A stretch of DNA of 64,000 nucleotides from Macrostomum lignano (lineage: Eukaryota). Shown piece after piece: positions 1-41,771 of this stretch. The translations under genes were made by a program, and so were the position numbers. The stretch's first letter is position 1. Each line of letters starts with the position of its first letter. Under the pieces are notes generated by a model that was not told the DNA's origin, searched no databases, and worked only from the letters and a program-made list of their open reading frames with translations. Location: contig NIVC01000020.1 of NCBI GenBank assembly GCA_002269645.1, positions 1,364,001-1,428,000 of the forward strand, written 5' to 3'.

Positions 1-3000
1 TCTAGTCCCTTTTTATAGCTAGGTGAAATAAAACAATAAAGAGTCAAATATCTTATTCAAGGATATAGGCCTACAACTTGTTATAAATGGGTTAAGAATC
101 AAATCCCAACTTTTCAATTGAGTCCAATATTCTTACTAGGGCTAAGCCTACCATTTTAATTAAAAATAAGTGAAATAAACAAGACAATAATTCAGTCATA
201 GGCCTACCATAACAAAAGACCCTACTATGAGTTTTAGACCTAAAAACAAAAACATCATTCCTGGTGGTGGTTACAATGTAATCTAACATTAATAGTTCTG
301 TCAATTTAACATTCAAATAAGCAAGTCTAAGCAGGAACAGGCTAGGTCTAGCTCCAAGTGCAATGTATGTACTAGTGCATCATACAGCATAGGTCTTTGT
401 GACCAAATATTTTTTATTTACTTTCGTCTCACTAACTCATTATGTCGATGGACTTATTCAAGTTATTGTTATATTTGTAGATTTGTAATTAGGGACATTT
501 AGTTTTGGGTTTTATTCAGCATATTAATTGGGGTAGGCTTATTGTTAAAAGATAGGCTTACGCTTAACTTCTGAGCTTAGTAATGGTCAAATGTCTAGTT
601 AAAACCAGTTCAGTAGGAAAACTCCGTAGCCTTCGTTACTTCGCAACATCGGGATGTTCTCAAGGCCATGTTTATTTATAGATTTACCACCTTCATAGAC
701 TTTAATGTTTTATTTACTGAAAATTTATAGGATATTTCAATCTTATTTTACATAACTATATCCGGTCTTGGCCCCATTCTTTAATATTTATCGTATCCGC
801 TTGTTTTAAACGGTAAAATAGGCCAGAAGTCACATGACCTAATGAGAATATTGAAACTTTGGGAATTACAAAAATTCTTAAAATAGCACAATTAGATTAG
901 ATAACGCTGGCTTTTTCCTTTAGCTGGAAATACACTTAAATGAATGAATTGATTAAAAGCAATATTCAAAGCAATTAAATTCACGTCGCCAAGTTCTATC
1001 TTGTATATAAGGACTAAGGCTGAAGTAGGGCCCGGTACGGAAGACCCGAAAATGAATTAGCCGTTGAGCTAGCCGTGACTAAGCAAAATTTTTAATGTGA
1101 ATTCACCCCGTAATTATACATTCGTGGCTGTGGTGCCATTTGTACGAGTCTATTTCTTTTCCTTCTACTGCGACGGCGGATTAATACATGTAATAATAAA
1201 TCTAAAAATATACAGTAGTATACATGTATATAGTAGGCAGATTTTCAGCTTGCACTTTAGCGCGTCACATTTTAACCAACTGTAAGCTTTATAGGGTCTC
1301 GGGACGGCTGTATGCTGATTTCCTTAGCAATAAGGCTGTCATTTGAGAGGGCTTTACATTTTAGGTTTCCAAGTTTTTTTAACAGAAGAAGAAGCGAATG
1401 TAAACATTTTCACGGTTTTCAATATTTTCTATTGATTTATTAGTCAATAAAAAGCGAGTGTTAGACGATTGGTTGGTCGCTGTTAGATTAAAAAGAAGAA
1501 AGGAACAATTTTTAAATAGAAATACTGCAGGTGCACTCGCAGAGCCCATGTCGTGCTGGCTGGGGGCGAGAACTTTGCTAACCGGACACGGGCGGATAGA
1601 AAAAGACAAATCAAGCAGCAATTCTAACGGGAAGAAGAAAAGGAGCAACACGCGGTGCTTCGAAAGAAAATCAGCATAACAAAAGCAGCTATAGTTGATA
1701 GCTAATAAATATGAATGGGATCTACAGGAAAGGTGGGACTATTTACGGCTAAGGAAGTTGGATCCCCAGTTGTCCCAAGATGCGGCAAGTGAGACGCCAG
1801 CAAAACAGAAAATTTAGGGCTTATATGCAAAAAGCGGGGAGGCAGCGGGATCGGTAAGCACAAACAAGGACACCGCTAAACCGGATTGGGCAGATTCAGT
1901 TCAAAAAGGTTGCAAGCAAAAATGAATAACATAGGAAGAAAAATGGCGGGAGGCGGGCAGTTCGACCCGGTAAAAAACGAAAAACATTAATTAAACTCAT
2001 CGCAATTAATTTGGAGCAGCAATTAAGCCAAACAAGGTGCAGGGTGCGGGGCTACTCATCAACTCAGCAACTCAGGTGTTAATATTGCTCTATACAACAG
2101 GCAACAAGCCTGACTACTTAGCCAGCAGTAGTTTAACCACAACAAATAGCAGCAGTTTAGTTCCAATCTACTGACATCGCACGCCGGCAGTAGTATGAGG
2201 CGCATTTCATATTTTTGGCGAAACTTAAACGAAGTATATTGATTGCTTCTTTATATTATTTTAGTTCACCTCATACTACTTGCAATAGGATTAAATGAAA
2301 TACTTTAGTGTTAAGAGAATTCCGAGAACGAACAGTCAATAAAGGCCGACTTAGCGATAAATTTCCAAGAAAGCAAAAGCCATGATGAAAAAAATTTCTG
2401 GTCCCTGTTGCAGGTTTGCTTCTTTAGTTAAATATAAAAAAACAGAAATGATTTGATGAAAAATCGCATTGTTGCAAGAGGTGCTTCGATGACTAGAGAG
2501 TCCGAGTGTCCCCGTTTAAATTTTGATCAAGACATCAACAGAAAATCCGCTCTCGGGAACTGCCAAGGGCCCAAATTGTTAAAATTCTAAATAATTTTGA
2601 TTAGTGCAATAAAAAAGAACAAAAAAGCAGACGAATACTACTCAGTAATAGCAGTAGTAGAGGTGCGATGCTGCGAGTAGAATTATCACGAGGATGTGAA
2701 ATAAAATATACAGCAGGTTAAAACTGATACTGCAGCGGGACGCGAGCCCATCGTTGCAAGTTGGTCGAAATTCGATTCCAGCTGAGCGGCCAGAAGGCGG
2801 GGGCCGGCGGAGTCAATGAAAAATCAATAAAAATTCAAACAGATAAAACAGTGCGGGAACAATGGGGCAATCGGGCATTGGGACTGAGAGTAGTGAGAAA
2901 AAGGTTGCGGCCCCGCAGACAGTTCCGTGTATTCGAGGGCCGATTCGAAAAGGCTCGGCTCAGTAAAACAAAATGTTCCTCAAGTTTTTTTAGCAAATAA

Positions 3001-3180
3001 AAGAAACTCGCACAGCAACCAACCGCTGGGATAGAAAAACTGAAAGAAAAATTAGCGGAAAATGAAACGAATGACGAAGGGAGGGGGGCAGAGGCGGAGG
3101 CGGACAGAAGTGGCGGAAAGGAGGGCAGCAGCGGCCCGAACTCAAAGTAAGCAGCAGCGCGGCGGTCCAGCTGGAGGCCC

Positions 3181-6100
3181 TCACAGGTCGGTCTCGCCGT
3201 ACAGCGTGGCTGAGAAGGTCGTGTAGTCCAGCGCGCCCGGCGGAGCGTCCGGCCCGCCGTAGGGCGACATGCGCTGGATGCAGTACTCCGCCTGGTCCGG
3301 CGGCAGCTCGCGGCGCAGCACCTCCGAGGTCACGTATGGCTAGTTGGGGGGATTGAGATCAGGATCAGTCTTTAAGAATTCACAGCAGCTAGTTGGGTCA
3401 GCTGGGTCAAGTAATTCGGTTTCGGTCAGCTTTAAAACCTCTGGAGGTCATTTGGGGTCAAGCCAATTGAGGTCAGGGGCTCGAGTCAGTCGGTATCGAA
3501 TGAGCTGGGATCAGATCTGCTTAGGTCAGGGCTCAGGTATCAAGTCAGCTACGGCAATGCAATGGGTCAGGTATGAGGTCAGCTGGGTCAAGTTTCAGGT
3601 CAGCTGGGTCGTTTGTCAGGTCAGCTGGGTTGTGTCAGCTAGGTCAAGTGTCAGGTCAGCTGGGTCAAGCGTCAGGTCAGCTGGGTCAAGTGTCAGGTCA
3701 GCTGGGTCAAGTGTCAGGTCAGCTAGGTCAAGTGTCAGGTCAGCTGGGTCAAGTGTCAGGTCAGCTGGGTCAAGTGTCAGGTCAGCTGGGTCAAGTGTCA
3801 GGTCAGCTGGGTCAAGTGTCAGGTCAGCTAGGTCAAGTGTCAGGTCAGCTGGGTCAAGTGTCAGGTCAGCTGGGTCAAGTGTCAGGTCAGCTGGGTCAAG
3901 TGTCAGGTCAGCTGGGTCAAGTGTCAGGTCAGCTGGGTCAAGTGTCAGGTCAGCTGGGTCGGGGGCCAAGTCAGGTGAGGTGAAGAATGCTCACCAGGTC
4001 GCCAGCCAGGATGCGGAAGGACTGAATGATCTGGTCCGCGGTGTTCTGGTCCGTCTTCTCGCTGGTCATGAAGTCCACAAAGGCGTCGAAGCCGACCTGG
4101 CCGGTGCGGTTGGGGTCCACCAGCGCCATGATGCGCGCGAAGTCCTGCTCGCCCTGCCGGTCGTTGCGGATGTTGTAGCCGAGGGACACCAGGCAGGCCT
4201 TGAACTCGATGGGGTCGAGGCGGCGGGTTTTGCTCTTGTCGAAGTGGTTGAAGCACTTGCGGAACTCCGTCATCTCATCGTTGGTGATGCCCTTGGAGTC
4301 CCTGCGACGGTGGGGAAATCGCTTGCGTTAAATATGCGCAGATTTATTTCAAGGCCTGATCTCGCTTCAAAATATGTCACCTTGATTTGAAAGTTTTCCC
4401 ATCCCATCTCATCTCATCTAATCTCAACTCCTCATCTCATCTAATCTATCTCATCTCACATCTAGCCTGTACTCGTCTGACTGGAGGTGGCTGCAGCCAG
4501 CGGGGAGGCCATGCCCTTTTCGACACGCTCACAAAGGGTGTACAGCGACCCTGAATATCTTATTGCCAGGCATGTACACTGTCTGTGCCTTGGGGGCTGG
4601 CTCTCAAGGGCGAGAGAGACCCTGAATATCTTATTGCCAGGCATGTACACTGTCTGTGCCTTGGGGGCTGGCTCTCAAGGGCGAGAGAGACCCTGAATAT
4701 CTTATTGCCAGGCATGTACACTGTCTGTGCCTTGGGGGCTGGCTCTCAAGGGCGAGAGTCGCACAACAAGCCCCAGGCAATGTTTTGAGCACGGAGCCCC
4801 AACTCGATGAGGCCGCGCTAACCACCAGCCTCAACTATTCGCGACTGGTATACCTGATATTTGTCTCTGGTAAAACCCCATTTGTGCTAAGCTGGCTACA
4901 CAGGAAGCAGCTGCAAGTGTAAAGAACTTGAAGACTCTTGTCTCATGGCAGATTTTTTAAACGCAGAATCAAGCGCTTGACACTTTGAAAAAGCTTTGGG
5001 CCGTATGCAGAAAGCCTAGTAGTCTGGACTTGGGTAGTTCAGTCTATAGTCTATGGTCTAGCTAGCCTAGTTTTGCTATAGTAGACTGGTCTAACTTTGT
5101 GTTTCTGCATACCAAATCCTAGTCTAGACTAGCTTTTCAAGACCGGACTACCCTAGACAGAGCTTTCTGCATACGGCCCTTTGAGAACTGAATAGGTGAA
5201 ACTAGATTTTTATAGATAAATTTGACTGCCGCCTACTGAAGAGTAGTAAGAAAAGAATGTAAAGCAAATATCTTGAAGCGAATGAGAAAAAAACAGTTGC
5301 AAACCGGACTTCGAGCACGGGTCTATGAGTAGTTCCAGTAACCATTCGAATCTCACTTCTGAGCATCAGACATGGACTCACTCATACAGGATCTTACAAT
5401 GACCGTCTATAAGGAATCGTTGGATATGCCGGCGACTTGACCCAGGTGCATGACTCACCTCATGAGAATCTGATTGGCCACTTCGTTAAGCGCTTTGGCA
5501 ATGGAGGTGTGCAGCTGCTCCCAGCCAACACGGATGGTCTCCATTGTGTAGGGCGAGTGCGGGTTGTCGAAGATGAAGGCCTCCTGGATGCTCTGGTTCA
5601 CCCGCTCCATCTCTTCGATGTTGCTCTGCGCAGGTGGCGGGGATGGGGGTTGCTGCATCAGCTCTGTTGTCTGGGATTCTGGGATAACAGAGTTGGGATC
5701 TGGGATTCTGGGATAACAGAGTTGGGATCTGGGATTCTGGGATAACAGAGTCTGGGATCTGGGATTCAGGGATAACTGAGTTGGGATCTGGGATTCTGGG
5801 ATAACAGAGTTGGGATCTGGGATTCTGGGATAACAGAGTCTGGGATCTGGGATTCAGGGATAACTGAGTTGGGATCTGGGATTCTGGGATAACAGAGTTG
5901 GGATCTGGGATTCAGGGATAACTGAGTTGGGATCTGGGATTCTGGGATAACAGAGTTGGGATCTGGGATTCTGGGATAACAGAGTTTGGGATCTGGGATT
6001 CTGGGATAACTGAGTTGGGATCTGGGATTCTGGGATGAGTTGGGATCAGGGATTCTGACATTCTGGGATAACTGTGTTGGGATCTGGGATTCTGGAACAA

Positions 6101-9100
6101 CCAAGAAGCGCCCAATAAGGCTCTCCCACCTTGAATCCTTGCAGCTCGTCCTGGATGGCGTTCAGCCGGCGGTCCTGCTCCTCCAGGCTGAGCTGCCGGC
6201 CGCTGGAGCAGATGCTGGACACGCCGTCCAGCCGCTGCTCGATCCACGGCCCGGCCACGTTGGCCAGGTCGGCGAACTGCCGCCGCAGGCGCTCGTTCTG
6301 GTGCTGCCGGGCCACCTCCTGCTGCAGGCTCTGGTCGCGGGCGGGCACCCGAGCGGAGACTTCGTCCCACTTTATGGCCAGCTCCTGTGGGCGGCATTTG
6401 AGAGCATCGCTAATTGCTGAAAGCCTGGGTCCGGAGTGCTAGGTTAGTTTTGGGACTGGGATCGATTAGTTTTAGGACTGCATGGGATCGATTAGTTTTG
6501 GGACTGGGATCGATTAGTTTTGGGACTGGGATCGATTAGTTTTGGGACTGGGATCGATTAGTTTTGGGACTGCATGGGATCGATTAGTTTTGGGACTGCA
6601 TGGGATCGATTAGTTTTGGGACTGGGATCGATTAGTTTTGGGACTGCATGGGATCGATTAGTTTTGGGACTGCATGGGATCGATTAGTTTTGGGACTGCA
6701 TGGGATCGATTAGTTTTGGGACTGCATGGGATCGATTAGTTTTGGGACTGGGATCGATTAGTTTTGGGACTGGGATCGATTAGTTTTGGGACTAAGGGAA
6801 AAAACAATGTTAAAGATGAAAATAACAGCAATATCTGCACTGCGCCACTGGCAGTAGCATGATGGGGAGTAAAAGCTAAAACTTTCTTTGCTTACTTTAA
6901 AGTAAAAATTAGAAAGGCTGTTGCAATTTAAAACAAATGAGCTGAGAGAACAAGAGCGCAGTAATTGGCGTTGCGCCACGATCCCCCCCCCCCACAGCTC
7001 TGCTCTCTCGCCCAGTCCAGCTGGCTCTCAGTCAGGGTTATCGAATTTCAAGCAGGGCAGTCTGCATTCGCGCCCCGAGACCCCCGCCCGCTGCCCGGCA
7101 CGACAAGGCCTGGACGGGAGACACCCTCACGGGATGGGGCGGTGGGCGGCTCCGTCACGCCCGGTTTCAAGGTGAACCGAGGAGTCTGGAGTGCCAACTC
7201 TGCTACACTGCGAGGCTACAGCAGTCTTCTGTGAAAACTGAAGTCCTGCCGTCTGCCTTGTCCAGTCTCCTGGCTCAGCATCTCCCTGAACCCCCTCAAC
7301 CGCCTCCATCCGCTGTACGCAGCCGAGCCGCAGAAATGCCGAGCTTTGGCCGCAAAGAAGTCTTCAAACTGGCTGGGGGTCACTGCAGCGGCCAGAGGGA
7401 GGGGAGGCCCCGGCACCGCACAGACAGCCGCCTTCCCAGGCTGCAGAGGCTGGGCGGCCCCATCCCCACCCCCTGGATTGATTTCCCGCTCCCTGCCTCC
7501 GCCGTTCGCACTGAAGCGGCTGGGGGGAGGGGGTGGCCGAGCGGGCAATTCGCAAATGGCAAGGGGAAAAATGCGGCCAGGGGGGGGGGGGGGGCTGGGG
7601 ATCCTGCATTGCAGCGGCAGCAAGGCGCTGCACCGTAACAGACACTGAACTGAACTGAACGCCCGCTTGGCAAAATGGCAGAGTGAATCTGGGGGGAGGG
7701 GGGCGCAGACGCAAAAGCCGCAGTTCGGGGCTCCGAAGGCTGCAAGCAAAAGTGCAGCGGCCGCATCCCGCATCCGCTCCCTAGATTGATTGCCGGGCGC
7801 AAAGGTGCAACAGGCGGAGGCTTGGAAGATGTCAGAAGGCGGGAGTCGGGGGGGGGGGGCAGGCTGGCCGTCCTCAACCACAGGCGTCTGCCGTTCCCAG
7901 CCTGTTAAACTCGAATACAGAAATCCTGCAGCTTGCCAAGCTAAACTAGCAATCCAATTATCGGGTTTGTGCGGATCCGCATTGCATGACTCACGGGAGC
8001 TCGCATGATTCACTTCTGCTTCCGTCATGTCGTGACTGGCATGACCCATTAAATATGCATGACCCAATCTTTTTCGAATAGCATGACTCTTTGACCCTGC
8101 ATGACCCAACTAGCATGACCCATTGATCCTGAATGACCCAACTAGGATGACCCATTGATCCTGAATGACCCAACTAGCATGACCCATTGATCCTGCATGA
8201 CCCATTGATTCTGCATGACCCAACTAGCATGACCTATTGATCCTGCATGACTCAACTAGCATGACCCATTGATCCTGCATGACTCAACTAGCATGACCCA
8301 TTGATCCTGCATGACCCAACTAGCATGACCCATTGATCCTGCATGACCCAACTAGCATGACCCATTGATCCTGCATGACCCATTGATCCTGCATGACCCA
8401 TTGATCCTGCATGACCCATTGATCCTGCATGACCCAACTAGCATGACCCATTGATCCTGCATGACCCATTGATCCTGCATGACCCATTGATCCTGCATGA
8501 CCCATTGATCCTGCATGACCCAACTAGCATGACCCATTGATCCTGCATGACCCAACCCAGCATTACCCACCAGGCCCCGCGGCTCACCCTGGCAGTCAGT
8601 CCGGTGTACGGGTTGATCAGCGCGTCGCCGGAAAGGCCGTGGGCGGCGGCCAGCTCGCGCACCTCGGCGTCGATTTGGGCGATGGCGCGGTGCTCGGCCT
8701 CGGCAGCCGGCAGGCTGGCCCGGAACTCCGAGTGGGCGGCCTGCAGCGAGTCCACCTCCTGCACCGAGTACACGATGAAGAAGTCCATCAGGTCCTCGTT
8801 CGCTCCGTCCAGCCAGTTGTTGAACGGGGCCGCCCGCTTGGCGAACTGCAGGTGCAGCTGGTCCAGCGACTCCAGCACCTGCTCCGCCTCGCGCAGGGCC
8901 CGCGACCTGCGACAGCGGACCGGGCTCGACTTCAGGTCCTCCGCTGCCCTCCTGACCTCCGCTACCCTCCTGACCTCCGCTGCCCTCCTGACTTCCGCTA
9001 CCCTCCTGACCTCCGCTACCCTCCTGACCTCCGCTACCCTCCTGACTTCCGCTGCCCTCCTGACCTCCGCTACCCTCCTGACCTCCGCTACCCTCCTGAC

Positions 9101-12100
9101 CTCCGCTACCCTCCTGACCTCCACTGCCCTTCTGACCTTCGCTACCCTCCTGACTTCCGCTGCCCTCGTGACCTCCGCTGCCCTCCTGACTTCCGCTGCC
9201 CTCGTGACCTCCGCTGCCCTCCTGACCTCCGCTACCCTCCTGACCTCCGCTGCCCTTCTGACTTTCGCTACCCTCCTGACCTCCGCTGCCCTCCTGAATG
9301 AATCCAGATGGTCTCACCTGGTGGTGCTGAGGACTCCCAGGCGGTCCCAGGCTCCGCAGATGGCCTGGCAGCGAGAGTTCACGGAGTCCAGGTCATGGTA
9401 GCCCAGGCTGTTCAGGTCCTCGGCAATCTTGCAGATCTGCTCCACCCGCTCCTGGTGAGCGCCGAGGTCGGCCTCGAAAGCCACCTGCTTGTTCATCATG
9501 GCTTTGAGGTCGTTCAGCTTGCACGATTTAAAGTCCTGCGACTGCTGCTGCGCCTCCTTGCCCTCCATCCAGGCCTCGTGGTTGCCGCACTTCAGCACGA
9601 ACTTCTTGTACAGATTCTCCAGCCTGCGGACGGGTGAGTCAGGAGCTACGAGTATGGTTACTGCATTGAGGATATTCTCAACTGTGCAACACCCACCACC
9701 CCAATCTCACCTGTGTAACACCCACCACCCCAATCTCACCTGTGCAACACCCACCACCCGAATCTCACCTGTGCAACACCCACCACCCCAATCTCACCTG
9801 TGTAACACCCACCACCTCAAACTCACCTGTGCAACACCCGCCCCCCCCTCAATCTCACCTGTGCAACACCCGCCACCCGAATCTCACCTGTGCAACACCC
9901 ACCACCCCAATCTCACCTGTGCAACACCCACCACCCCAATCTCACCTGTGCAACACCCACCACCCCAATCTCACCTGTGCAACACCCACCACCACAATCT
10001 CACCTGTGCAACACCCACCACCACAATCTCACCTGTGCAACACCCGCCACCCGAATCTCACCTATGCAACACCCACCACCCCAATCTCACCTGTGCAACA
10101 CCCACCACCCCAATCTCAACTGTGCAACACCCACCACCACAATCTCACCTGTGCAACACCCACCACCACAATCTCACCTGTGCAACACCCGCCACCCGAA
10201 TCTCACCTGTGCAACACCCACCACCACAATCTCAACTGTGCAACACCCACCATCCCATTCTCACCTGTTCATCACCCACCCCCCAAACTCACCTGTGCAG
10301 CCGCTGCATCTCCGCCAGCATCCACTCCTCGAATCCTTTCTCGGCCTTCTCCAGCCCCTTCCAGGCGTTGGCGATGTCGGAGACCAGCTTGCCCTCGGTG
10401 GGCAGGTAGGCAGGCCGGTTGCTGAGGCGCAGTCGAGTCTGCAAGGTGTTGAAGGTGGTCTCCAGCAGGGCCTTCTCCTCCAGTTTGGGCGGCTTCTCAG
10501 CCCGGCGATAGTCTCGAAACTGGTTGAGGCGGTCGCGAACGCCGTCCAGGGTGTTGTCGGTGCTGCGGTCCTCCAGGATCGGGCGGGTCCGCTTGATCCA
10601 GGCTAGCAGGTCGCTGGCCAGGCGCTCGTAGAGGTCCATGAGCTTCTCGTTCTCCTGGTTGACGCGGAGCACCTTGCAGATCCGGTTGGCGGCGGTCTCC
10701 GCCTTCTGGGCGCCCGAGAAGGCGTGGTAGTAGGCAGACACGTAGGTCATCACGGACCGCTCGTCCGGCTTCACGTTGTTCACCATGTCTGCGGGGCATG
10801 ATGCCAGTGTACAGGTGTGATACCAGTGTACAGGTGTGATACCAGTATACAGGTGTGATACCAGTATACAGGTGTGATGGCAGTGTACAGGTGTGATACC
10901 AGTGTACAGGTGTGATACCAGTGTACAGGTGTGATACCAGTGTACAGGTGTGATACCAGTATACAGGTGTGATGGCAGTGTACAGGTGTGATCCCGTGTA
11001 CAGGTGTGATGCCTGTGTACAGGTGTGATACCAGTGTACAGGTGTGATGCCTGTGTACAGGTGTGATGCCTGTGTACAGGTGTGATGCCTGTGTACAGGT
11101 GTGATGCCTGTGTACAGGTGTGATGCCTGTGTACAGGTGTGATATCAGTGTACAGGTGTGATCCCGTGTACAGGTGTGATGCCTGTGTACAGGTATGATA
11201 TCAGTGTACAGGTGTGATCCCGTGTACAGGTGTGATCCCATGTACAGGCGTGATGCCTGTGTACAGGTGTGATACCAGTGTACAGGTGTGATGCCTGTGT
11301 ACAGATGTGATGCCTGTGTACAGGTGTGATGCCTGTGTACAGGTGTGATATCAGTGTACAGGTGTAATTTCAGGTGTGACACCAGATTACCAGTGTACAG
11401 GTGTGATACCAGTGTACAGGTGTGATGCCAGCGTACAGTTGTGATGCCAGCGTACAGGTGTGATGCCAGCGTACAGGTGTGATGCCTGTGTACAGGTGTG
11501 ATGCCTGTGTACAGGTGTGATGCCTGTGTACAGGTGTGATATCAGTGTACAGGTGTAATTTCAGGTGTGACACCAGATTACCAGTGTACAGGTGTGATAC
11601 CAGTGTACAGGTGTAATTTCAGGTGTGACACCAGATTACCAGTGTACAGGTGTGATATCAGTGTACAGGTGTGATCCCGTGTACAGGTGTGATACCAGTG
11701 TACAGGTGTGATGCCAGCGTACAGGTGTGATGCCAGCGTACAGGTGTGATGCCTGTGTACAGGTGTGATGCCTGTGTACTGTTGTGATGTCAGTACACAG
11801 ACAAGATTGGAAGCATAGAAATCTTATGTATAGATGAGAGGACATTGATGCCAATGATGCCAATGAGCTGCACTCATATCCCCAGCGCTCACCTTCGGGA
11901 TCCAACATCCTGGGAATGTCCAGGTGCTTCTCGGCCACATCGAAAGCGAGGTTCAGGTTTTCCAGCGGGTTGTCCTGCAGTTTTTACAGCGTCGGCGAAC
12001 ATTTGAGGTTGGCTAATATAAAGCAATAAAACTGCACTACTTCAAGGCAGCCCGCCTGAGAATTTTATGGCTGCTATAAAACTGGTTAGTAGAAACACCA

Positions 12101-15100
12101 GGCAGCAGGCATGAGTACAGGCAGGGAGGTGGCAGGCAGGCAACTCACTTTGCTCAGCTTGTCATAGTCGATGAGCTCCGGCCTGTGCCTGTGGATCAGC
12201 GCACAGAATGCCAGGCCGTCCTGGAAGCTGCAAGAGTAGAAAAGGGGGGTCCCGGCTGCTGCGACAGGGGGTTCGGATCGGCATGCGGTGCTGGGAGGCA
12301 AATGTGAGTAGCTGAACAACAGGAATGCCCGAAATCTGCTGCAATCCCTATCTACAGACACTGTAATCCCTATCTACAGACACTGTAATCCCTACCTACA
12401 GACACTGTAATCCCTATCTACAGACACTGTAATCCCTACCTACAGACACTGTACTCCTTATCTACAGAAACTGTAATCCCAATCTACAGACACTGTAATC
12501 CCTGTCTACAGAGTACAGACACTGTACTCCCTATCTACAGACACTGTAATCCCTATCTACAGACACTGTAATCCCTGTCTACAGACACTGTACTTCCTAT
12601 CTACAGACACTGTAATCCCTGTCTACAGAGTACAGACACTGTACTCCCTATCTACAGACACTGTAATCCCTATCTACAGACACTGTAATCCCTGTCTACA
12701 GACACTGTACTCCCTATCTACAGACACTGTAATCCCTGTCTACAGACACTGTAATCCCTGTCTACAGAGTACAGACACTGTACTCTCTATCTACAGACAC
12801 TAATCCCTATCTACAGACACTAATCCCTATCTACAGACACTAATCCCTATCTACAGACACTGTAATCCCTGTCTACAGACACTGTAATCCCTGTCTACAG
12901 ACACTAATCCCTATCTACAGACACTAATCCCTATCTACAGACACTGTAATCCATGTCTACAGACACTGTAATCCCTATCTACAGACACTGTAATCCCAAT
13001 CTACAGACACTGTAATCCTTATCTACAGACACTGTAATCCTTATCTACAGACACTGTAATCCTTATCTACAGACACTGTAATCCCTATCTACAGACCCTG
13101 TAATCTCAATCTACAGACACTGCACCACCCACCCAGCAGGATTGCAGCAGAATCAGGTGACAGAACAGCAAAGTCAGCAAGCAGCTCATGCGGTGAGAAG
13201 GCAAGCGACAATGCATTGAACAGCAGAGGTCAGTCGGCATGCCCTGCAGGCGAGCGCACTGACTGACCCTTGAGAGCTTCGAATAGTCGAGCAGCTCCGG
13301 CCTGTGCCGGTGGATGAGCGCGCAGAAGGCCAGGCCGTCCTTCCAGCTGCGATCGAGTTGCGCAACAGGTGGACGGAACGCGTTGTGATTCCGAAATTGA
13401 TGCTGAGCTCTCCCAGATCCCCAATCCCAATTTAGCACAGAGCGCCCCTTGCCCAGCCAGCTCACCTCATGTGAAAGTTCTGCACGTTCACGTTCTTGTA
13501 GGGAGCGGTCTTGCGCTGGCACCACAGCAGGAGGCCCTCCTTGGCGGTCATCTCTGCGTTTGGCGGCGTGGTTTAAAGTACAACTGCACTAATATTAACA
13601 ACCAGTAAAATTCTGACTTACCTTCAACGGTGATGTCCTGGATGGCGAAGCGGAGGATGATCGTCCAGATCATGCCCAGCGTCATCTTCACGTTGCCGTC
13701 CACGATTTCTAAAATTCCAGTTTTAAGCCACGAGATAAATGACCGCGAGCCTTCTAGAGGGACCAGATTCTCCACGGCGCCAGACACTCCTATCTAGAGG
13801 CGCCAGACACTCGTATCTAGAGGCGCCAAATACTCGTATCTAGAGGCACCAGACTCTCTTTTACAGAGGCGCCAGACACACTCACCCAGAGGCGCCAGAT
13901 ACTCGTACCCAGGGGCGCCAGACACTCATTTAGAGGCGCCAGATACTCGTATGCAGAGACGCCAGGCACTCTCACCTAGAGGCGCCAGATACTCGTATCA
14001 AGAGACGCCAGGCACTCTCACCCAGAGGCGTCAGGCACTCTCACCCAGAGGCGCCAGGCACTCGTATCAAGAGACGCCAGGCACTCTCACCCAGAGGCGT
14101 CAGGCACTCTCACCCAGAGGCGCCAGGCACTCGTATCAAGAGACGCCAGGCACTCTCACCCAGAGGCGTCAGGCACTCTCACCTAGAGGCGCCAGATACT
14201 CGTATCAAGAGACGCCAGGCACTCTCACCTAGAGACGCCAGGCACTCTCACCCAGAGGCGCCAGGCACTCTCACCCAGAGGCGCCAGGCACTCTCACCCA
14301 GAGGCGCCAGGCACTCTCATCCAGAGGCGCCAGGAACTCAAACCTCCCCACCAAAGCGCCACTCACCCTCGGCGCCAATGGACACGAGCTGCACGCCCTT
14401 GCGCTCGATGAACTCCAGCGCCTTGTTGACATTGTTAATCTTGTGAAAGCGCATTCGGCCCCGCTCTGGCTTGGGCAAAGCCTCGCCCGAAATCACCTCC
14501 AGCAGCAGCATGAGCTTCAAGCCAGAGCACAGGTCCTGGGTGATATCCTCGATGGAGGTGTCAGCTTTGCGCAGGAAGGAATTGATCCAGGCTGTGAATG
14601 TCTGTGCATGTGCAAAACAGTTTGTTCAACATTAATGGAAGGCTTGTAATAGGAGACAAAATCTTAGATATTGAAATTACGAGCTATATTGAATGGTTAA
14701 ATATATATAGATATTAAAGATTAAATATCGATATATTTTAAAATCAGATTATATACAAGACTATCATTAATCTTATACAAGAAGTGACTAAACAAAAGGA
14801 ATATATGAGCTATATGTAAAATTCAAAAAGATTTTTTAATCATAGATGAATTAAAGATTAAATAAGATATACAGCTTAGTATTAAATTTTTAAAGCAAAA
14901 TAAAATAATTTGATTATTTTAAAAAGGATTATCATCTTTAAAAAGCTTTATTGCCATTTTATTTTTATAATAATTTCATCCTTGAGTTTAAAGCAAACTT
15001 GTACATTCACTAGCATAATGGAATATTAAATATTTAGTACATATGCATATCATTGTTACATTAAGATAAGTGATAAGAACATACTTACTATATATAAATA

Positions 15101-15758
15101 CATATATAACAATGAGAAAAGATGAAGATGGGATAGTGCAAATTACAAATCTAAATAAATAGAAAATATTTTAACTTTAACTACTAAGTTAGTTTTCTAT
15201 ATATTAGAGTTTATTACCCTAAGCACAAAAATTTAAATCATATGACTAAGTTGGTCATTTCTGTAGTCAAAGGATAATATGCAACAAAAGCCAAAGGACA
15301 ATAAACTATCAAGTCTAATTTGATAATTGATTATAGACTAGTGATATCAATAGTATTGATTTTTTATCACAAAAGAAACAACCGTCTTTCAAATTTAGTA
15401 GGAAAATTTTAGCACTGAGCTGCGCTGGCGGCTGGCCTAGATTTTTAAGTCAGATTTTTATAGTAAGGCTTAAATTATCTAAATTGAATTTTTTGAACTT
15501 TAAAATAACAGTTTTTTAGCAGCAATTAGACAATAAAAACTATACACCTGCGATTAGTTCAAGAGCTCATGACCATGTTGCATTGAATAAACATTTAAAA
15601 GTGAAAAGTACCTTTTTCTGCTGGATCTCCCACACAGGGTCCAGAAAGTCTTCCCTGTTCCATTCTTCCTCTTCTTCTTCTTCGCCATCATAGTACCCAG
15701 GACCATTATTGTACGCTGAGCCATTGTTGCTGTTATAATACTGCCCTGAATTAGCCAT
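3181..15758 (-). CDS. ACTN: Alpha-actinin, 13 coding exons per isoform, 908 aa (CH1-CH2, 4 spectrin repeats, EF-hand/CaM-like domain)
   Basis: Exons in transcript order: 15612-15758, 14367-14601, 13622-13708, 13466-13553, [13268-13346 OR 12149-12227], 11893-11974, 10293-10788, 9318-9623, 8588-8906, 6130-6384, 5459-5625, 3995-4301, 3181-3339. All junctions are GT-AG and phase-compatible; total 2727 nt including TGA. Hallmark peptides: [82 protein letters not shown]. Confidence 0.97.
3575..3960. repeat. 21-bp minisatellite GTCAGGTCAGCTGGGTCAAGT
   Basis: Tandem array in the last actinin intron. Confidence 0.95.
4400..4850 (-). mobile_element. SINE-like element with (AGATG)n tail; central domain triplicated as a 71-bp tandem repeat
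   Basis: On the minus strand: degraded tRNA-like head, core CCTTGAGAGCCAGCCCCCAAGGCACAGACAGTGTACATGCC homologous to the 35483 SINE, a different 3' region, and an (AGATG)n tail at 4400-4462. Confidence 0.65.
4998..5179. mobile_element. 182-bp MITE, PIF/Harbinger-like
   Basis: Perfect 18-bp TIRs GGGCCGTATGCAGAAAGC (4998-5015) and GCTTTCTGCATACGGCCC (5162-5179), with TTT on both flanks as a candidate 3-bp TSD. Superfamily is inferred from the GGGC end and the 3-bp TSD. Confidence 0.75.
5672..6095. repeat. 29-bp minisatellite CTGGGATTCTGGGATAACAGAGTTGGGAT
   Basis: Tandem array built on CTGGGAT heptamers; actinin intron. Confidence 0.95.
6445..6795. repeat. 22/26-bp minisatellite GATCGATTAGTTTTGGGACTG(CATG)G
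   Basis: Tandem array; actinin intron. Confidence 0.95.
8095..8555. repeat. Mixed 18/14-bp minisatellite CATGACCCATTGATCCTG / CATGACCCAACTAG
   Basis: Tandem array; actinin intron. Confidence 0.95.
8935..9295. repeat. 18-bp minisatellite CCTCCTGACCTCCGCTAC
   Basis: Tandem array; actinin intron. Confidence 0.95.
9682..10292. repeat. 29-bp minisatellite containing the actinin exon-7 donor sequence
   Basis: Unit CAATCTCACCTGTGCAACACCCACCACCC; on the sense strand it reads TGCACAG|GTGAG, as at the real donor (10291-10292). Confidence 0.95.
10800..11790. repeat. 19/20-bp minisatellite CCAGTGTACAGGTGTGATA
   Basis: Tandem array with variant units; actinin intron. Confidence 0.95.
12149..12227 (-). 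CDS. ACTN: Alpha-actinin alternative exon 5b (CH2): (S)[26 protein letters not shown]
   Basis: 79 nt, polypyrimidine plus tgcag acceptor, gtgagt donor, phase 2 to 0; paralogous to 13268-13346. Confidence 0.9.
12347..13120. repeat. 22-bp minisatellite CTACAGACACTGTAATCCCTAT between alternative exons 5a and 5b
   Basis: Tandem array bracketed by an inverted repeat at 12336-12348 and 13139-13151. Confidence 0.95.
13268..13346 (-). CDS. ACTN: Alpha-actinin alternative exon 5a (CH2): (S)[26 protein letters not shown]
   Basis: 79 nt, cgcag acceptor, gtcagt donor, phase 2 to 0. Confidence 0.9.
13780..14335. repeat. 23-bp minisatellite GAGGCGCCAGGCACTCTCACCCA
   Basis: Degenerate tandem array; actinin intron 2. 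Confidence 0.9.
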
Positions 15759-16111
15759 ACTTAAAGATGACAAACTAAGTATGCCGAACTGAACCAAATA
15801 TCCGAGATGCAGTGGATAATGGATTCAGGAAGAAAAATTGACTGAACTTTTTCATTCAAATATAATTGTGGATGTTAATAAAAAGCAGTGAAACAAATTC
15901 ACTACAATAGTTAGTTACTTGTCGTATCCAGCATTTTAAATTAAAAAATAATACTAAAATTTTATGTTTTGAACCTTCTTAACTTAAAAGCTTTTATTTC
16001 TAAATTTTATTGTGTGCGTCTCTGGTAAATTCAGTTTGTGAAACTACCATCTATTTTTAGTGAAAATTTCATGAGGTCGTAAAGCGTGATTTAGACGATC
16101 CAAATGACGAT
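15759..16111. promoter_or_regulatory. Probable bidirectional promoter and 5' leader region shared by alpha-actinin and vasohibin
   Basis: Only 353 bp of very AT-rich DNA separate the two divergent start codons. Promoter function is inferred from the geometry. Confidence 0.6.
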
Positions 16112-19040
16112 ATGAATGCCGATTTTGATGAAACAACGTTGTTTCTAACAAACAAAAACGGATTTCCAATTGACGATGGCACCTGGAGCAATATGTGGAA
16201 ATTTGCTGAGTATCAGCAACCCAAAGCTAAAGAAAAGATTCGAAGTATAAGAGCGACTCCAGCAAACGATTTGGCTGAGGTATACTAATGAATATATTTG
16301 AAATGCATGCATATGCTATCCACTCTACGGTTCTTAAAATAAAAGACTCTTGAAAACTCCTGTTATCTGTTTTCCTCTGTAAATAGCCAAAGGCTATTCT
16401 CATCGCTTTCTGACAAATTTTGAGTTAAATCACATACACGAATCTTTTCCCTATTTTTCAGCCAAAAATCCCAGTGCCACCACTCACATTTCCGATTGGT
16501 TCGACGACATCGTCAAAAATACTGGCCGTTCAAAAATACTTTGCTGAGCTGCAGTAAGTGAATGGTATATTTGGCCTCTTGCTGCATACACTGGAACAAG
16601 ATCTCTTTGCCTTAAACTATTTTGAGCAGAGTTTCAAACAAAAAGGTCCCTGAAGAGTCAATAATTTTTATCCTCCCTATCTATCGTTCGCAATCATTTT
16701 AGATACAATCATACTGGCACGCAATTTTTCGAAATAAAAAAGTACCGCTCTTTTACTGGGTAAGATCAGAAAAACATTAAAGAATTGCTGTTGCGAAAAT
16801 CACCAAAAGCCGAGCCTTCATCTCATTGCAGTCTCATGGAAGATGCCAAACAGATGATAAAAGAATCTCTGCCAATAAAATGCCTGGAGGCCGTTGTCCT
16901 CGGAATGTAAGTGCTGATCCGGTTTACATCTAATTGCTTCAGTGTTATCGCAATAGCAATCTCTGAATTCTACGAGTTTGCGAGACCCTCGTGACAACCT
17001 GATTCCCACCCCCAGCTACCTGACCAACAAGATCGAGGACCTCACCCGCTTCGCAATCGGATTCAAGTCGGCCTTCAACGGTCACGTGCACCGGCACGTC
17101 GTGCTGGGCCTGTACAGCAAGGGGATGTTCGGAGCTCTTGGGATCAGCCGGCGAGACGATCTGATGTACAAACCGCTGACCTTTAAGGTAACTTTGGTTG
17201 GTGTACTCAGACATTTCTAATGCAAGCGAATACTGCAGTAGTAATGCAGGCAACCCAGCAGTCCCCTGCAAACCCCAGCAGACTCTAACGGAACTCATCA
17301 TGGAGTACAAGGCGGCCTACCAGCGGCACTGGCACAAGCTGAAGCAGGTGAAGATCGGCATGGCCATCGGCAAGAATCCGCACAGCTTCGAGCCGCTGCC
17401 GTGGAAGGTGCCGTCTGAGCTTCGATTTGCAAGATTTCAAGTTCTGCTTGGCGCACGCACGCTCTGTCATTTCGCCCCCCTCCCCTCCTCCCGTACTCCA
17501 GGGCCTGACAGTCTTCCCCAGCAGCCAGCCGTTTGAGGAGATGCGCAGCGAGCTGGAGAAATTCTCTAAGCTGGTGAGTAAAGTTTCAGAGCAGGGGGGG
17601 GGGGCGTCAGCACGTTTTAGGACTAAAATCTGTCAAAAAGAACCAGCCTGGCCAGTTTGAATGGGCTCACAGCTACCAGAATAAGAATCGTGTTTTACGA
17701 TCTGTGAATGAGCTTTACTGCTCATGATTGATAAGCTCAAAGCGGCTACACTGAGCTCTGCTTTGGTTGGCCGGTCCTGGGGCTGATAGCAATGAGCAGG
17801 CGGCTTGACTGCACCAGACAGAGTGTCCTGGGGCTGATAGCAATGAGCAGGCGGCTTGACTGCACCAGACAGGGTGTCCTTGGTCTGATAAAGAAATTTT
17901 AATGACATTGCATGTGTGAGGAGCAGAAACTGATGCAAATCAATTGAAACCGTAATTGGATAAAAACAGAGCGAAACCACCATGATATCAATGGCATTCT
18001 GGGCCTATGAACAATTAGTAAGGGCACTGGAATCTGTACTAAGGGCACTGGAATCTGTACTAAGAACACTAGTCAGTCAGTACTAAGTCAGTACTAAGGA
18101 CACTGAAGTCAGTACTAAGGGCACTGAAGTCAGTACTAAGGACACTGAAGTCAGTACTAAGGGCACTGAAGTCAGTACTAAGGGCACTGAAGTCAGTACT
18201 AAGGGCACTGAAGTCAGTACTAAGGGCACTGAAGTCAGTACTAAGGGCACTGAAGTCAGTACTAAGGGCACTGAAGTCAGTACTAAGGGCACTGAAGTCA
18301 GTACTAAGGGCACTGAAGTCAGTACTAAGGGCACTGAAGTCAGTACTAAGGGCACTGAAGTCAGTACTAAGGACACTGAAGTCAGTACTAAGGGCACTGA
18401 AGTCAGTACTAAGGACACTGAAGTCAGTACTAAGGGCACTGAAGTCAGTACTAAGGACACTGAAGTCAGTACTAAGGGCACTGAAGTCAGTACTAAGGGC
18501 ACTGAAGTCAGTACTAAGGGCACTGAAGTCAGTACTAAGGGCACTGAAGTCAGTACTAAGGGCACTGAAGTCAGTACTAAGGGCACTGAAGTCAGTACTA
18601 AGGGCACTGAAGTCAGTACTAAGGGCACTGAAGTCAATACTAAGGGCACTGAAGTCAGTACTAAGGGCACTGAAGTCAGTACTAAGGGCACTGGAGTCAG
18701 AGCTTTCCGCCATGACATCCGCCATGCAGGTGAGGCACGGCGCCAGCTTCTCCCACCAGCAGCAGGCGGCGGCCCGCCGGGAGCGGCTGCCCCGCAGTGC
18801 CAGCCTGCCGGCCCTCAGCCAGCCGGCCTCCCCACAGCGCTCCGCCCAAGAGCCCGCGCAGCACCGCGGCAGACAGCAGCAGCAGCAGCAGCAGCAGTCA
18901 GCAACTCCTCAGAAGTCGCTGCTAATGCGGTGAGTTGTTTACAGCCGCCCTCAACGCCTGCAGGCAGCGACAAAAACTCCTTCATCCTCATTTGCCCCCC
19001 GCATTTCAGAAAGAAGTCCGGCTACCTTCTGCGCGTCTGA
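16112..19040 (+). CDS. VASH: Vasohibin family tubulinyl-Tyr carboxypeptidase, 9 exons, 330 aa
   Basis: Exons 16112-16279, 16462-16553, 16703-16759, 16832-16906, 17016-17187, 17282-17407, 17502-17573, 18730-18929, 19010-19040; all GT-AG and in phase. Motifs: LQYNHTGTQFFEIKK, catalytic LPIKCLEAV, RHVVLG, GALGISRRDDLMYKP, C-terminal GYLLRV (human VASH1 ends GYQIRV). Confidence 0.95.
17775..17880. repeat. Two-copy direct repeat GTCCTGGGGCTGATAGCAATGAGCAGGCGGCTTGACTGCACCAGACAG
   Basis: Vasohibin intron 7. Confidence 0.85.
18020..18700. repeat. 21-bp minisatellite CACTGAAGTCAGTACTAAGGG
   Basis: Tandem array; vasohibin intron 7. Confidence 0.95.
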
Positions 19041-20280: not shown

Positions 20281-21196
20281 TCAGAAAATCTGCCTGCCGT
20301 ACGCGACCACCTCGCACAGGGTCAGGCCTTCGATCGGCAGGTCCACCTGCCCCGTCCGGCCCACCCGGCCGCAGCTGAAATTCTTCACAGAGAAGCTGCT
20401 CGGCTCGAAGTAGGACGTGAAATCGACGCCATCGAGGCTGATGGTGAAGTTGTTGAGCCTCTGAGAGCAGCAGTCTACCCGGTTGTACAGGGCCACGCGG
20501 TCGATGTATGCCCGCTGCGGCAGACTGGCCCGCCACCAGGCGTTCCTGGCGGAGCTCGTGTGGGTGCAGGAGCCGGCAGAGAAGTTCTGGTTGGTGCTGC
20601 CGTCGATGGCCAGGCCGCACGGGCCGCCAAAGCCGGTGTCGACCTGCTGGCAGCTGGAGAACAGCAGCCGGTCCTCCACTGCATGAGTTGTTTGCGTGAG
20701 TCCAGTCAGAGCTTTGAGCTCGGCAATTAAAGGCGTGAGTCCAGTCAGAGCTTTGAGCTCGGCAATTAAAGGCGTGAGTCCAGTCAGAGCTTTGAGCTCG
20801 GCAATTAAAGGCGTGAGTCCAGTCAGAGCTTTGAGCTCGGCAATTAAAGGCGTGAGTCCAGTCAGAGCTTTGAGCTCGGCAATTAAAGGCGTGAGTCCAG
20901 TCAGAGCTTTGATCTCGGCAATGAAAGGCGTGAGTCCAGTCAGAGCTTTGAGCTCGGCAATGAAAGCACAGGTGCGAGAGACTCACCCGACTCCTTTGCG
21001 AACAGGCTGCTGGGGCAGTCGGCGGTGGCTGCCGCTTCCACTGCCAGCAGATGAGCTCGCAGCGGCGACCAGAAGCACCCAAAGCAGCAGCTGCTGCCTG
21101 CCCCTCACTGCCAGCATTTTTGGTGCAGAATACTTGGCACTGCTGTGCGCTGCTTAAATAACGCTGAGCCTCCACCTGGTAGCTGCGATCTTCCAT
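20281..21196 (-). CDS. PAN/apple-like plus F-type lectin (fucolectin, FTP domain) gene; upstream exon apparently frameshifted
   Basis: FTP exon 20281-20678 is intact, with an exact H-X26-R-X-D-X4-R fucose-binding motif (CTHT...YNRVDCCSQRL). The upstream exon donor at 20985-20986 (gtgagt) is phase-compatible only in the frame ATADCPSSLFAKES, while the PAN-like cysteines (SSAQQCQVFC...RRCELI) are in another frame. Confidence 0.75.
20694..20965. repeat. 39-bp minisatellite GCGTGAGTCCAGTCAGAGCTTTGAGCTCGGCAATTAAAG
   Basis: About 7 copies filling the F-type lectin intron. Confidence 0.95.
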
Positions 21197-22241: not shown

Positions 22242-23435
22242 GTTTTGCTTCCTCAGCCTTCTCAATGCTCAATTCTCTCTACTTTGCTTGTTGTAGTTGC
22301 AAATTTTTTATTATTTGATTGGAAATTTCACAGTTCCTCCGAAGTTTGCTAGAAATGTTTTTGCTGATCAAAACCGCTCTGCATCTCTGAGCAAAAAGCT
22401 GCCTTTGCTTTGTACCTCGCCTTAATCACTGCGTCCCCCTGCATTATCATGTTTCATTGTGTCGCATTGTTTCATTGACTTTCAGCTCTCTTGCCAGTCC
22501 TGCACCTCCCACTTTCTAAACGCGGTGCCTCGGTATCTATAAATACGAAGCCACCGCTGCTTAGGACACATTGCGTCTGGTTCAACTGCGTCCCTCATAT
22601 TCCATGTGTTTCTGCCTTGCTGCTTTAGAGACGATCCAACTACAAAGAGAAGGGCAGTGCCACTATCACTACATGCAGACTGTCGGGTCTGCCACTCTGC
22701 CCTATGCTTAGATGCTAGCTAAGCTGATCACAATCCCCTGTTGAGGACTCGTCAATTCACCTGATTTCAGCCGACCTGCGTTCCATGGGCGACCTCTGAA
22801 ATCCTTGAAGGCACAAAATGCACTTGCTAATAAAGTTTTAGCATCCTTTAGCGGTTAAGCTTATCTGATTAACCATCTCTGTGAGAAGTAGTCAGAGACT
22901 TTGCTAGGTGTCCGCATCTCACAGCATGGAATCCTCCGCTTGGGTGCTGCAGGGGGCATTGCGAGGCCTTTGATGGCTTTGACAAGATAGCCTTGCCCTG
23001 AGCCCAATTCGAGTTCATTCCTACGAGCTACGTGGTTCCGCACGGCAGCGAGCGGCATTGGCTCAGGGACTCGTGCGGGACTCGTGCGGGACTCGTGCGG
23101 TATTGTGTAAAAACTGCAGATTTACTCCTAGTGAGCCATTCGTCAGCGGAAGCGAAGTTGCTGGTGCACCAATTCTGCAGCTGACCTGAATTATTAATTT
23201 TTGGCCACTGCCCTTCAAAAATTTTGCACAGCGAATGGAAAAACTTCCTTACAACCCGCTGTTACGCTGCGGCTGCGGCTGTAGTTGCTAAAACAATTGC
23301 AATGCATCTTCTTCTGATTGTAGCAGCCAGTTTGCAGTCGGCTCCTGTGTTCTCTTATTTGAGTGACGGCCTTCTTTGCTCAATCCTGACTCGTGATGAG
23401 ATATAGACTAAAGGGGCGCCCAGGCTTGGGGGATG

Positions 23436-24426
23436 ATCCCGCCTCCCGGATCCCGCATCCCGGATCCCGCATCCCGGATCCCGCATCCCGGATCCCGCAT
23501 CCCGGATCCCGCATCCCGGATCCCGCATCCCGGATCCCGCATCCCGGATCCCGCATCCCGGATCCCGCATCCCGGATCCTGCATCCCGGATCCCGCATCC
23601 CGGATCCCGCATCCCGGATCCCGCATCCCGGATCCCGCATCCCGGATCCCGCATCCCGGATCCCGCATCCCGGATCCCGCATCCCGGATCCCGCATCCCG
23701 GATCCCGCATCCCGGATCCCGCATCCCGGATCCCGCATCCCGGATCCCGCATCCCGGATCCCGCATCCCGGATCCCGCATCCCGGATCCCGCATCCCGGA
23801 TCCCGCATCCCGGATCCCGCATCCCGGATCCCGCATCCCGGATCCCGCATCCCGGATCCCGCATCCCGGATCCCGCATCCCGGATCCCGCATCCCGGATC
23901 CCGCATCCCGGATCCCGCATCCCGGATCCCGCATCCCGGATCCCGCATCCCGGATCCCGCATCCCGGATCCCGCATCCCGGATCCCGCATCCCGGATCCC
24001 GCATCCCGGATCCCGCATCCCGGATCCCGCATCCCGGATCCCGCATCCCGGATCCCGCATCCCGGATCCCGCATCCCGGATCCCGCATCCCGGATCCCGC
24101 ATCCCGGATCCCGCATCCCGGATCCCGCATCCCGGATCCCGCATCCCGGATCCCGCATCCCGGATCCCGCATCCCGGATCCCGCATCCCGGATCCCGCAT
24201 CCCGGATCCCGCATCCCGGATCCCGCATCCCGGATCCCGCATCCCGGATCCCGCATCCCGGATCCCGCATCCCGGATCCCGCATCCCGGATCCCGCATCC
24301 CGGATCCCGCATCCCGGATCCCGCATCCCGGATCCCGCATCCCGGATCCCGCATCCCGGATCCCGCATCCCGGATCCCGCATCCCGGATCCCGCATCCCG
24401 GATCCCGCATCCCGGATCCCGCATCC
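23436..24426. repeat. Near-perfect 14-bp satellite (GGATCCC GCATCCC)n, about 70 copies
   Basis: One visible variant near 23580; a short orphan copy at 24693-24745. Confidence 0.98.
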
Positions 24427-24649
24427 AAGGAACACACCAGACTTGACAATATTTGTGTGCTTTCCTATTTCCCTAGGCTGTAGTACATTTCCTCCTAGAA
24501 GAAGTCTCCAATGCAACAGTTAAGTATTCATGCAATGCGCTCATCTGTTGGCTCCGGCAAGATGCGGGAGACTCCGTTTCACCTCTCACTGCCGTGCAGC
24601 AGCAACAGGGGGCAGAGACCGATTGTTAAGATAATAGAAATAATGCTAA

Positions 24650-27425: not shown

Positions 27426-27521
27426 GTGAGGCAGCAGCTTGATTGATTGACGAATGCTCTTCGAATTCCTCATTTCCTCATTCGAATATTAAATACCTTA
27501 TTTTTAATTCGAGCATATTCC

Positions 27522-30268: not shown

Positions 30269-41771
<11,503 letters not shown>

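Follow-up and report, generated by a model that had tools for sequence, protein, structure and literature searches.

Most invertebrates encode alpha-actinin, the ancestral actin cross-linker, in a single gene. Recurrent and convergent substitutions of tandem exons have been reported in the actinin family, in vertebrates, arthropods, and nematodes. The closest described systems are exons 8a/8b of vertebrate ACTN genes and the alternative exons of Drosophila and other arthropod Actn, which are tandem, mutually exclusive, located in the second CH domain (CH2), and a few substitutions apart. Exon 8 of ACTN4 holds K255 and T259, and its alternative version in ACTN4-SpEx8, with the changes N249G/A251L/S264C, is believed to change how CH1 and CH2 close and open. 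The alternative exons of the actin-binding domain are tissue-specific in flies. According to a paper that credits Lek et al. (2010), the exon 8 duplication is older than the human–Drosophila split. A second pair, 19a/19b of vertebrate ACTN1 and ACTN4, follows the same splicing logic in the same family but in a different domain, the EF-hand, which is either Ca-sensitive or Ca-insensitive; this pair is said to have arisen in chordates. The muscle myosin heavy chain of protostomes (PMC3912159) shares the general strategy of using tandem exon duplicates instead of gene duplicates, but it is a different protein and its alternatives form multi-exon clusters rather than a pair.

Here we describe a pair of alternative exons, 5a and 5b, in the alpha-actinin gene of the flatworm Macrostomum lignano. 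The gene lies in a 64,000-nucleotide (nt) stretch of contig NIVC01000020.1 (positions 1,364,001 to 1,428,000, assembly GCA_002269645.1), which is referred to as the window. Unlike the exon 8 pair, which covers approximately residues 247–275 of ACTN4 (K255, T259, S262) in the last CH2 helix with the motif DIVNT..PDE.A.MTYVS..YHAF, the M. lignano pair duplicates the exon for W180–K205 of ACTN2. We conclude with high confidence that 5a and 5b go back to the tandem duplication of a single alpha-actinin exon, that they are mutually exclusive and ancient, and that purifying selection has kept both.

Results

Identity of the gene

The gene model was built by tblastn and subsequent inspection of the boundaries, with a human ACTN1 sequence as the guide; the product is collinear with human ACTN1 over its entire length, and all introns are GT-AG. 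The GenBank counterpart is BOX15_Mlig007449g1 (protein PAA93892.1, assembly Mlig_3_7), and positions 1181-17812 of the window are the exact reverse complement of the deposited locus. The 5b isoform modelled on the window sequence matches PAA93892.1 exactly, except for an upstream in-frame read-through in the latter. An exact look-up of both 908-residue isoforms gave no match as such; the deposited proteins begin upstream of the ATG. A full-length homologue search returned one cluster at 97% identity, composed of M. lignano proteins and one RNA-derived contig, and all other matches were at or below 70%; full-length protostome alpha-actinins are 70% identical. The N-terminal segment of 249 residues matches structures of the human ACTN2 actin-binding domain over its full length (E 5e-133), and Pfam finds the CH, spectrin, and EF-hand families in PAA93892.1 (PF00307, PF00435, PF00036/PF13405, and PF08726). 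The gene is thus an alpha-actinin with a two-CH actin-binding domain, a spectrin-repeat rod, and an EF-hand end with a Ca-insensitive tail. A second M. lignano copy, approximately 99% identical, is on NIVC01004449.1.

The 5a/5b pair

Exons 5a and 5b lie between constant exons 4 and 6 (Table 1). Exon 4 covers the first CH2 helix and the greater part of the loop to which binding of phosphatidylinositol 4,5-bisphosphate (PIP2) was mapped, and a gap-free alignment of the M. lignano actin-binding domain places exon 5 at W180–K205 of human ACTN2. Both alternatives have the same phase (2 to 0), taking two nucleotides of a serine codon from exon 4 and ending at a codon boundary before exon 6. Their splice sites are intact, with acceptor ...gatcgcag/C and donor AGG/gtcagt for 5a, and acceptor ...ctcttgcag/C and donor AAA/gtgagt for 5b. 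The two exons are identical at 61 of 79 nt (77%) and at 81% of their amino acids. Among 27 codons, 22 specify the same residue, seven of the differences are synonymous only, and five replace a residue (from 5a to 5b, W to F, K to Q, L to I, S to D, and R to K). By the Nei–Gojobori method (NG86), the nonsynonymous distance dN is 0.19 and the synonymous distance dS 0.72, giving a dN/dS of ca. 0.26.

Because each exon is 79 nt long, inclusion or skipping of both shifts the frame and leads to an early stop. With exons 4, 5a, and 5b joined in series, the stop falls within 5b; with exon 4 joined straight to exon 6, it falls nine codons into exon 6. Hence, only single-inclusion mRNAs can give the protein. 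These results bear out the initial annotation, which had described two paralogous 79-nt exons of equal phase with intact sites, whose joint inclusion or omission breaks the frame. Its exon coordinates and the four single-inclusion junctions (13466-13346, 13268-11974, 13466-12227, and 12149-11974) proved correct when the sequence was re-read. Its further claim that both exons are under selection agrees with the dN/dS of the pair and with the intactness of both exons in the second gene copy and across phyla. As one slot is taken by two open paralogues competent for splicing, and as the same layout recurs in that copy and in four species of three other phyla, a chance origin of 5a and 5b is excluded.

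Table 1. Positions of the alpha-actinin gene, its alternative exons and the elements around them in the window.
Feature	Position	Strand	Description
Alpha-actinin coding region	3181..15758	minus	ATG (15758) to TGA (3181); 13 exon slots, 908 residues with 5a or 5b
Constant exon 4	13466..13553	minus	88 nt; ends ...NFHM plus 2 nt of a Ser codon; approximately ACTN2 150-179
Exon 5a	13268..13346	minus	79 nt; a-type, upstream member; AG/GT-bounded
Exon 5b	12149..12227	minus	79 nt; b-type, downstream member; AG/GT-bounded
Constant exon 6	11893..11974	minus	82 nt
5a–5b intron	12228..13267	minus	1040 nt; chiefly minisatellite
Minisatellite	12339..13122	.	22-nt unit, 35.1 copies, 87% matches; fills the 5a–5b intron, ca. 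784 nt
Inverted repeat, upstream arm	13139..13151	minus	UCUGCUGCAAUCC; 13 nt, perfect
Inverted repeat, downstream arm	12335..12347	minus	GGAUUGCAGCAGA
GCAUG	13238..13242	minus	26 nt downstream of the 5a donor
GCAUG	13187-13191	minus	+77 from the 5a donor
GCAUG	12282..12286	minus	59 nt upstream of the 5b acceptor

Both exons occur in transcript-derived models

We then inspected the deposited models and transcripts of M. lignano and its relative. PAA93892.1, the model at the window locus, carries 5b, and so do three UniRef models of M. lignano. PAA47452.1 and PAA52094.1, from the copy on NIVC01004449.1, carry 5a and have a few other amino acid differences. Exon 5a is also present in a 2.9-kb Logan transcript contig from run SRR28338165 (97% amino acid and ca. 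92% nucleotide identity), which evidently comes from a species related to M. lignano; its 5a differs at five nucleotides, and all five differences are synonymous. All seven sequences therefore carry exactly one of the two exons (three with 5a, four with 5b), and none of these seven aligned cluster members has both or neither. The mutually exclusive inclusion put forward in the initial annotation is thus seen in every transcript-derived model. A third homologue search with a 263-residue query added no further Macrostomum fragments, and 5b is seen in one Macrostomum species.

The GenBank annotation of M. lignano merged StringTie/TACO assemblies of RNA-seq reads with a de novo transcriptome, and kept only isoforms at or above 0.75 of the major isoform. 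Given this filter, and as 5a and 5b are each the reported form at near-identical gene copies, the models suggest that both are abundant, with reads multi-mapping between the copies. In the second copy, 5a is identical to that of the window at 79 of 79 nt and 5b at 78 of 79. The comparison of exon with intron conservation between the copies was uninformative, since they are too alike overall, with 94–100% identity everywhere (94–98% in introns).

The alternative that one of the two exons is unused or a decaying pseudo-exon can draw on the weak polypyrimidine tract of 5a and on usage evidence that stands at the level of models rather than reads. It is nevertheless highly improbable, as frame, splice sites, and length are intact in both exons of both M. 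lignano copies and across phyla, and both exons appear in models derived from RNA-seq.

The pair is shared across Lophotrochozoa

Genomic loci of other species were probed with the exon peptides. The genomic comparison covers five species, namely M. lignano, the annelids Capitella teleta and Dimorphilus gyrociliatus, the mollusc Lottia gigantea, and the bryozoan Watersipora subatra; Ruditapes X2 and Lineus X3, which have no genomic record, stand outside it. In line with the initial suggestion to look for both exons in spiralian genomes, the pair is present in all four other species, which represent three other phyla. Each has two exons between the equivalents of exons 4 and 6; all are exactly 79 nt long, AG/GT-bounded, and in the same order as in M. 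lignano, and the second exon 5 is unannotated at these four loci. The introns separating the a and b exons measure 303–1052 nt across loci.

The two positions have recognizable sequences. The upstream exon reads ...PEL(L)DY..LSR, often with W, and the downstream exon F...LIDY..LSK. The last residue is R upstream and K downstream in four of the five species, W upstream faces F downstream in all three species in which that position differs, and the ...EL(L/I)DY position has L upstream and I downstream in three species. Pairing the exons by position gives a higher amino acid identity than cross-pairing in eight of ten species pairs; one further pair is a tie, and one favours cross-pairing. Macrostomum 5b is peculiar in having Q for K at its second residue and D at position 22. 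In cross-phylum comparisons of exon 5, dN is 0.04–0.22 while dS is saturated for nearly all pairs, which argues for purifying selection acting on both copies over a long time. The saturation of synonymous sites made the nucleotide-level orthology of the a and b exons uninformative.

Deposited isoforms of molluscs vary at the same place. Among the top 120 full-length matches, the RefSeq isoforms of Gigantopelta aegis, Ruditapes philippinarum, and Ostrea edulis differ precisely at exon 5, and so do two models of Sinanodonta under one locus tag. In Gigantopelta aegis, isoforms X3 and X2 share one form of exon 5, and X4 and X1 the other. The F-type and W-type forms of Haliotis come from different species. 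W and F also both occur at the exon 5 position in a search with a short query, whose matches were all shorter than 190 residues and which missed Macrostomum. Both M. lignano exons are likewise in public gene models. Rather than a novelty of one lineage, the pair is accordingly common to Lophotrochozoa and already part of public isoform annotation. A deposited model of Nucella lapillus (941 residues) has two exon-5-like motifs 52 residues apart, and may read through both alternative exons.

The mollusc RefSeq isoforms and the Lottia, Capitella, Dimorphilus, and Watersipora loci agree with M. lignano in exon slot, 79-nt length, phase, and the order of W/...LSR before F/...LSK, so that the M. lignano pair is most likely orthologous to that of molluscs, annelids, and bryozoans. 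It differs from the mollusc-type pair in its intron, which is swollen in Macrostomum by the 784-nt minisatellite. Most likely, a single duplication of the exon preceded the divergence of annelids, molluscs, bryozoans, and flatworms, and both copies would have been under purifying selection ever since.

Two other histories were weighed against this single early origin. The first is a recent duplication specific to Macrostomum or flatworms, to which the dS of 0.72 between M. lignano 5a and 5b (below the saturated values of other species) and the one exon in the slot of a cestode would point. This history has a very small probability: Capitella, Dimorphilus, Lottia, and Watersipora all have two 79-nt exons with the same order and signature, mollusc RefSeq isoforms vary at exon 5, and the strongly GC-biased codon use of M. 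lignano would likewise be expected to lower its dS. The second is that the pairs of different phyla arose independently, by convergent duplication of the same exon. Recurrent tandem duplication of exons is reported for the actinin family, the signature is incomplete in Watersipora and the annelids, and the nucleotide identity between a and b within a species (63–77%) is on average not below that between exons of the same type in different species (61–77%). The exon, its 79-nt size, and its phase are, however, all identical, the R/K ends hold in four of five species and the W/F order in three of three informative ones, and the pair occurs in four phyla, whereas none of the examined loci of spider, moth, and cestode has it. 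Convergence is therefore unlikely, though less so than a recent duplication, and a single early origin is preferred.

Watersipora and Dimorphilus also have tandem copies, bounded by AG/GT, of the exon 4 equivalent, which encodes the PIP2 loop (locus L009, 15920-16006 and 16278-16361; locus L010, 3181-3264 and 3319-3405). The second exon 4 copy of Watersipora has PYD instead of PYK at the position of ACTN2 R169. No second exon 4 was found in the M. lignano, Capitella, or Lottia loci.

Other lineages and other actinin exon switches

The locus of the cestode Dibothriocephalus latus has a single exon 5 with mixed a and b features (W...LIDY..LSK). An additional, divergent actinin-like protein of this species has an F-type sequence, and in parasitic flatworms the duplication of the gene may have taken the place of the exon switch. 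Exon 5 is single in a spider (Trichonephila) and a moth (Galleria) too, which instead have tandem duplicates of the D.VNT.KPDERA.MTYVS.YYHAF.GAQ exon (locus L005, 58472-58558 and 58627-58713; locus L007, 41595-41720 and 42717-42803). This exon corresponds to the exon 8 region of ACTN4, and the arthropod pattern is thus the reverse of the spiralian one. A second copy of the exon 8 equivalent is absent from all spiralian loci examined, and in M. lignano, Watersipora, and Dimorphilus this exon seems fused to the coding sequence that follows it.

Within M. lignano, the exon 8 equivalent is single and forms the N-terminal portion of the 496-nt exon 7. Equating vertebrate exon 8 with M. lignano exon 6 was considered and rejected on the residue numbers of ACTN4. 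Both EF-hands are encoded by one single-copy exon (4301-3995); neither an EF-hand exon pair nor a second exon 8 equivalent was found, and the rest of the protein gave single matches by tblastn within the window. The initial annotation was thus right that the duplicated exon differs from those of the vertebrate pairs. The spiralian and the arthropod/vertebrate switches affect the same domain by means of different exons, which agrees with the reported recurrence of tandem exon substitutions in the actinin family.

Relation to PIP2 binding

According to the paper on the ACTN2 structure, PIP2 binding was first mapped to residues 165–181, in the loop that joins the first CH2 helix to the second, and R163, R169, and R192 form the binding platform. 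The initial annotation placed the change from WK to FQ at the end of the mapped segment, and indeed W180 and K181 close it. It went on to suggest that the isoforms differ in phosphoinositide control, that is, that the switch serves PIP2 regulation through the lost lysine. Besides the position of W180 and K181 at the end of segment 165–181, the encoding of platform residue R192 by exon 5 would fit this proposal. Against it, the b-type exons of the four other genomic species and the mollusc isoform pairs keep K, leaving the change from K to Q to Macrostomum only. All a and b exons encode the same R192, the equivalents of R163 and R169 are encoded by the constant exon 4 of M. lignano, and the differences kept between a and b are W/F, L/I, E/D, and R/K. 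As the lysine change is confined to Macrostomum and R192 is invariant, PIP2 control is not favoured as the reason for the switch, and we regard it as improbable.

Intron elements and regulation

At 1040 nt, the intron between 5a and 5b exceeds the length at which simple steric exclusion would work, and the splice sites are all GT-AG. A search for competing RNA pairings of the docking/selector kind gave matches at chance level only, save for the 13-nt inverted repeat that flanks the minisatellite in both gene copies (ca. 0.02 expected by chance in the region). If its arms paired, the minisatellite would be looped out and ca. 220 nt would be left between the exons. CUGAC and a run of pyrimidines stand before the upstream arm, so that a distant branch point is conceivable.

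GCAUG is the core motif of Rbfox. Besides the three M. lignano sites listed in Table 1, Lottia and Watersipora, unlike the annelids Capitella and Dimorphilus, have (U)GCAUG in the 60 nt that precede the b exon, in a window chosen post hoc. The polypyrimidine tract of M. lignano 5b is stronger than the weak tract of 5a. A general rule that the b exon has the stronger tract was tried and rejected, as a count on the sequences agreed with it in M. lignano, Lottia, and Dimorphilus and disagreed in Capitella and Watersipora. Taken post hoc, the pattern of GCAUG and polypyrimidine tracts weakly suggests that 5b might be the default exon and 5a the activated one.

Nearly every intron of the actinin gene (3600-14400; for example, 11000-11794, 12339-13122, and 13776-14339) holds a different minisatellite, with units of 19–29 nt in 25–42 copies, and further arrays lie at approximately 18100-18700, 20400-21000, and 23400-24500. 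The intron minisatellites fit the share of 15% reported for simple and tandem repeats in the M. lignano genome.

Other features of the window

On the plus strand, from approximately 16112 to past 17812, a gene of the vasohibin family is arranged head-to-head with that for actinin, and this layout is repeated at the second gene copy. Within the actinin gene, the GC content contrasts between 37% at exon 1 and intron 1 (14001-16000) and 59% mid-gene (8001-10000). Elsewhere, Pfam identified coding pieces of an F5/8 type C domain (20284-20982, minus strand), a SUEL lectin domain (26822-27439, plus), two synaptotagmin-like C2 domains (40181-41768, plus), an OATP transporter (48200-50900, plus), and a fragment of a piggyBac-like transposase (62550-63248, minus). 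Two long unbroken reading frames on the plus strand, at 51593-53119 (509 residues) and 55246-56706 (487 residues), have no Pfam match and look like membrane-protein paralogues of each other.

Discussion

By this reading, each mature alpha-actinin mRNA takes either 5a or 5b, giving two 908-residue isoforms that are five residues apart, and mRNAs with both or neither would be removed by nonsense-mediated decay. The differences between the isoforms fall in the segment that opens the second CH2 helix (ACTN2 W180–K205). The most likely role would be to tune the actin-binding domain according to cell type, by way of, say, CH2 stability or the balance between closed and open CH1–CH2. As the exchanges W/F at the helix start, L/I, E/D, and R/K are conservative, they would imply a fine adjustment of CH2 packing or of the CH1–CH2 interface. 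Such tuning would be analogous to the arthropod/vertebrate exon 8 switch, two exons further upstream.

Several points weigh against this interpretation. The conserved differences between a and b are chemically conservative, and the function is inferred. Cross-phylum orthology of the a and b exons depends on three to four informative residues in 26. Exon usage is read from assembled models rather than from junction counts at the level of reads, and with one model per M. lignano locus, the use of 5a and that of 5b are seen on different copies that are ca. 99% identical. Beyond the frame rule, the sequence yielded no mechanism of exclusivity.

A wider scenario, which we offer tentatively and hold to be clearly less probable than the exclusive, ancient pair itself, is that the choice of exon 5 has been a switch between muscle or neurons and general cells for more than 500 million years throughout Lophotrochozoa, with Rbfox as a possible driver that acts on GCAUG elements close to the b exon. 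In that case, spiralians would tune the CH2 'brake' on actin binding of a single-gene actinin, the problem that arthropods and vertebrates also met, by duplicating a different CH2 exon, with the bryozoan and Dimorphilus also duplicating exon 4.

The paper of Lek and colleagues is reportedly the key one on the evolution of actinin splicing. No paper describing the exon 5 pair was found in the literature searched; Lek et al. (2010; MBE 27:773) lay outside that search and may mention the pair. The mollusc isoforms are in any case recorded in RefSeq. The pair adds to the tandem mutually exclusive exons known from the actin-binding domain of alpha-actinin, among which it stands out by its age and by the different exon that is duplicated.

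One actinin gene has to serve both muscle Z-discs and non-muscle adhesions, and flies and vertebrates answer with an either/or CH2 exon. Flatworms, annelids, molluscs, and bryozoans have a second, separate either/or CH2 exon, without the fly/vertebrate one in the species examined. This offers a natural comparison of two routes to tuning one domain, in which selection has kept a few conservative residues different over a very long time (W/F180, L/I198, and R/K205 in ACTN2 numbering). For annotation, each M. lignano gene copy should carry two isoforms rather than one. As M. lignano is tractable to transgenesis, the switch is directly testable in this animal.

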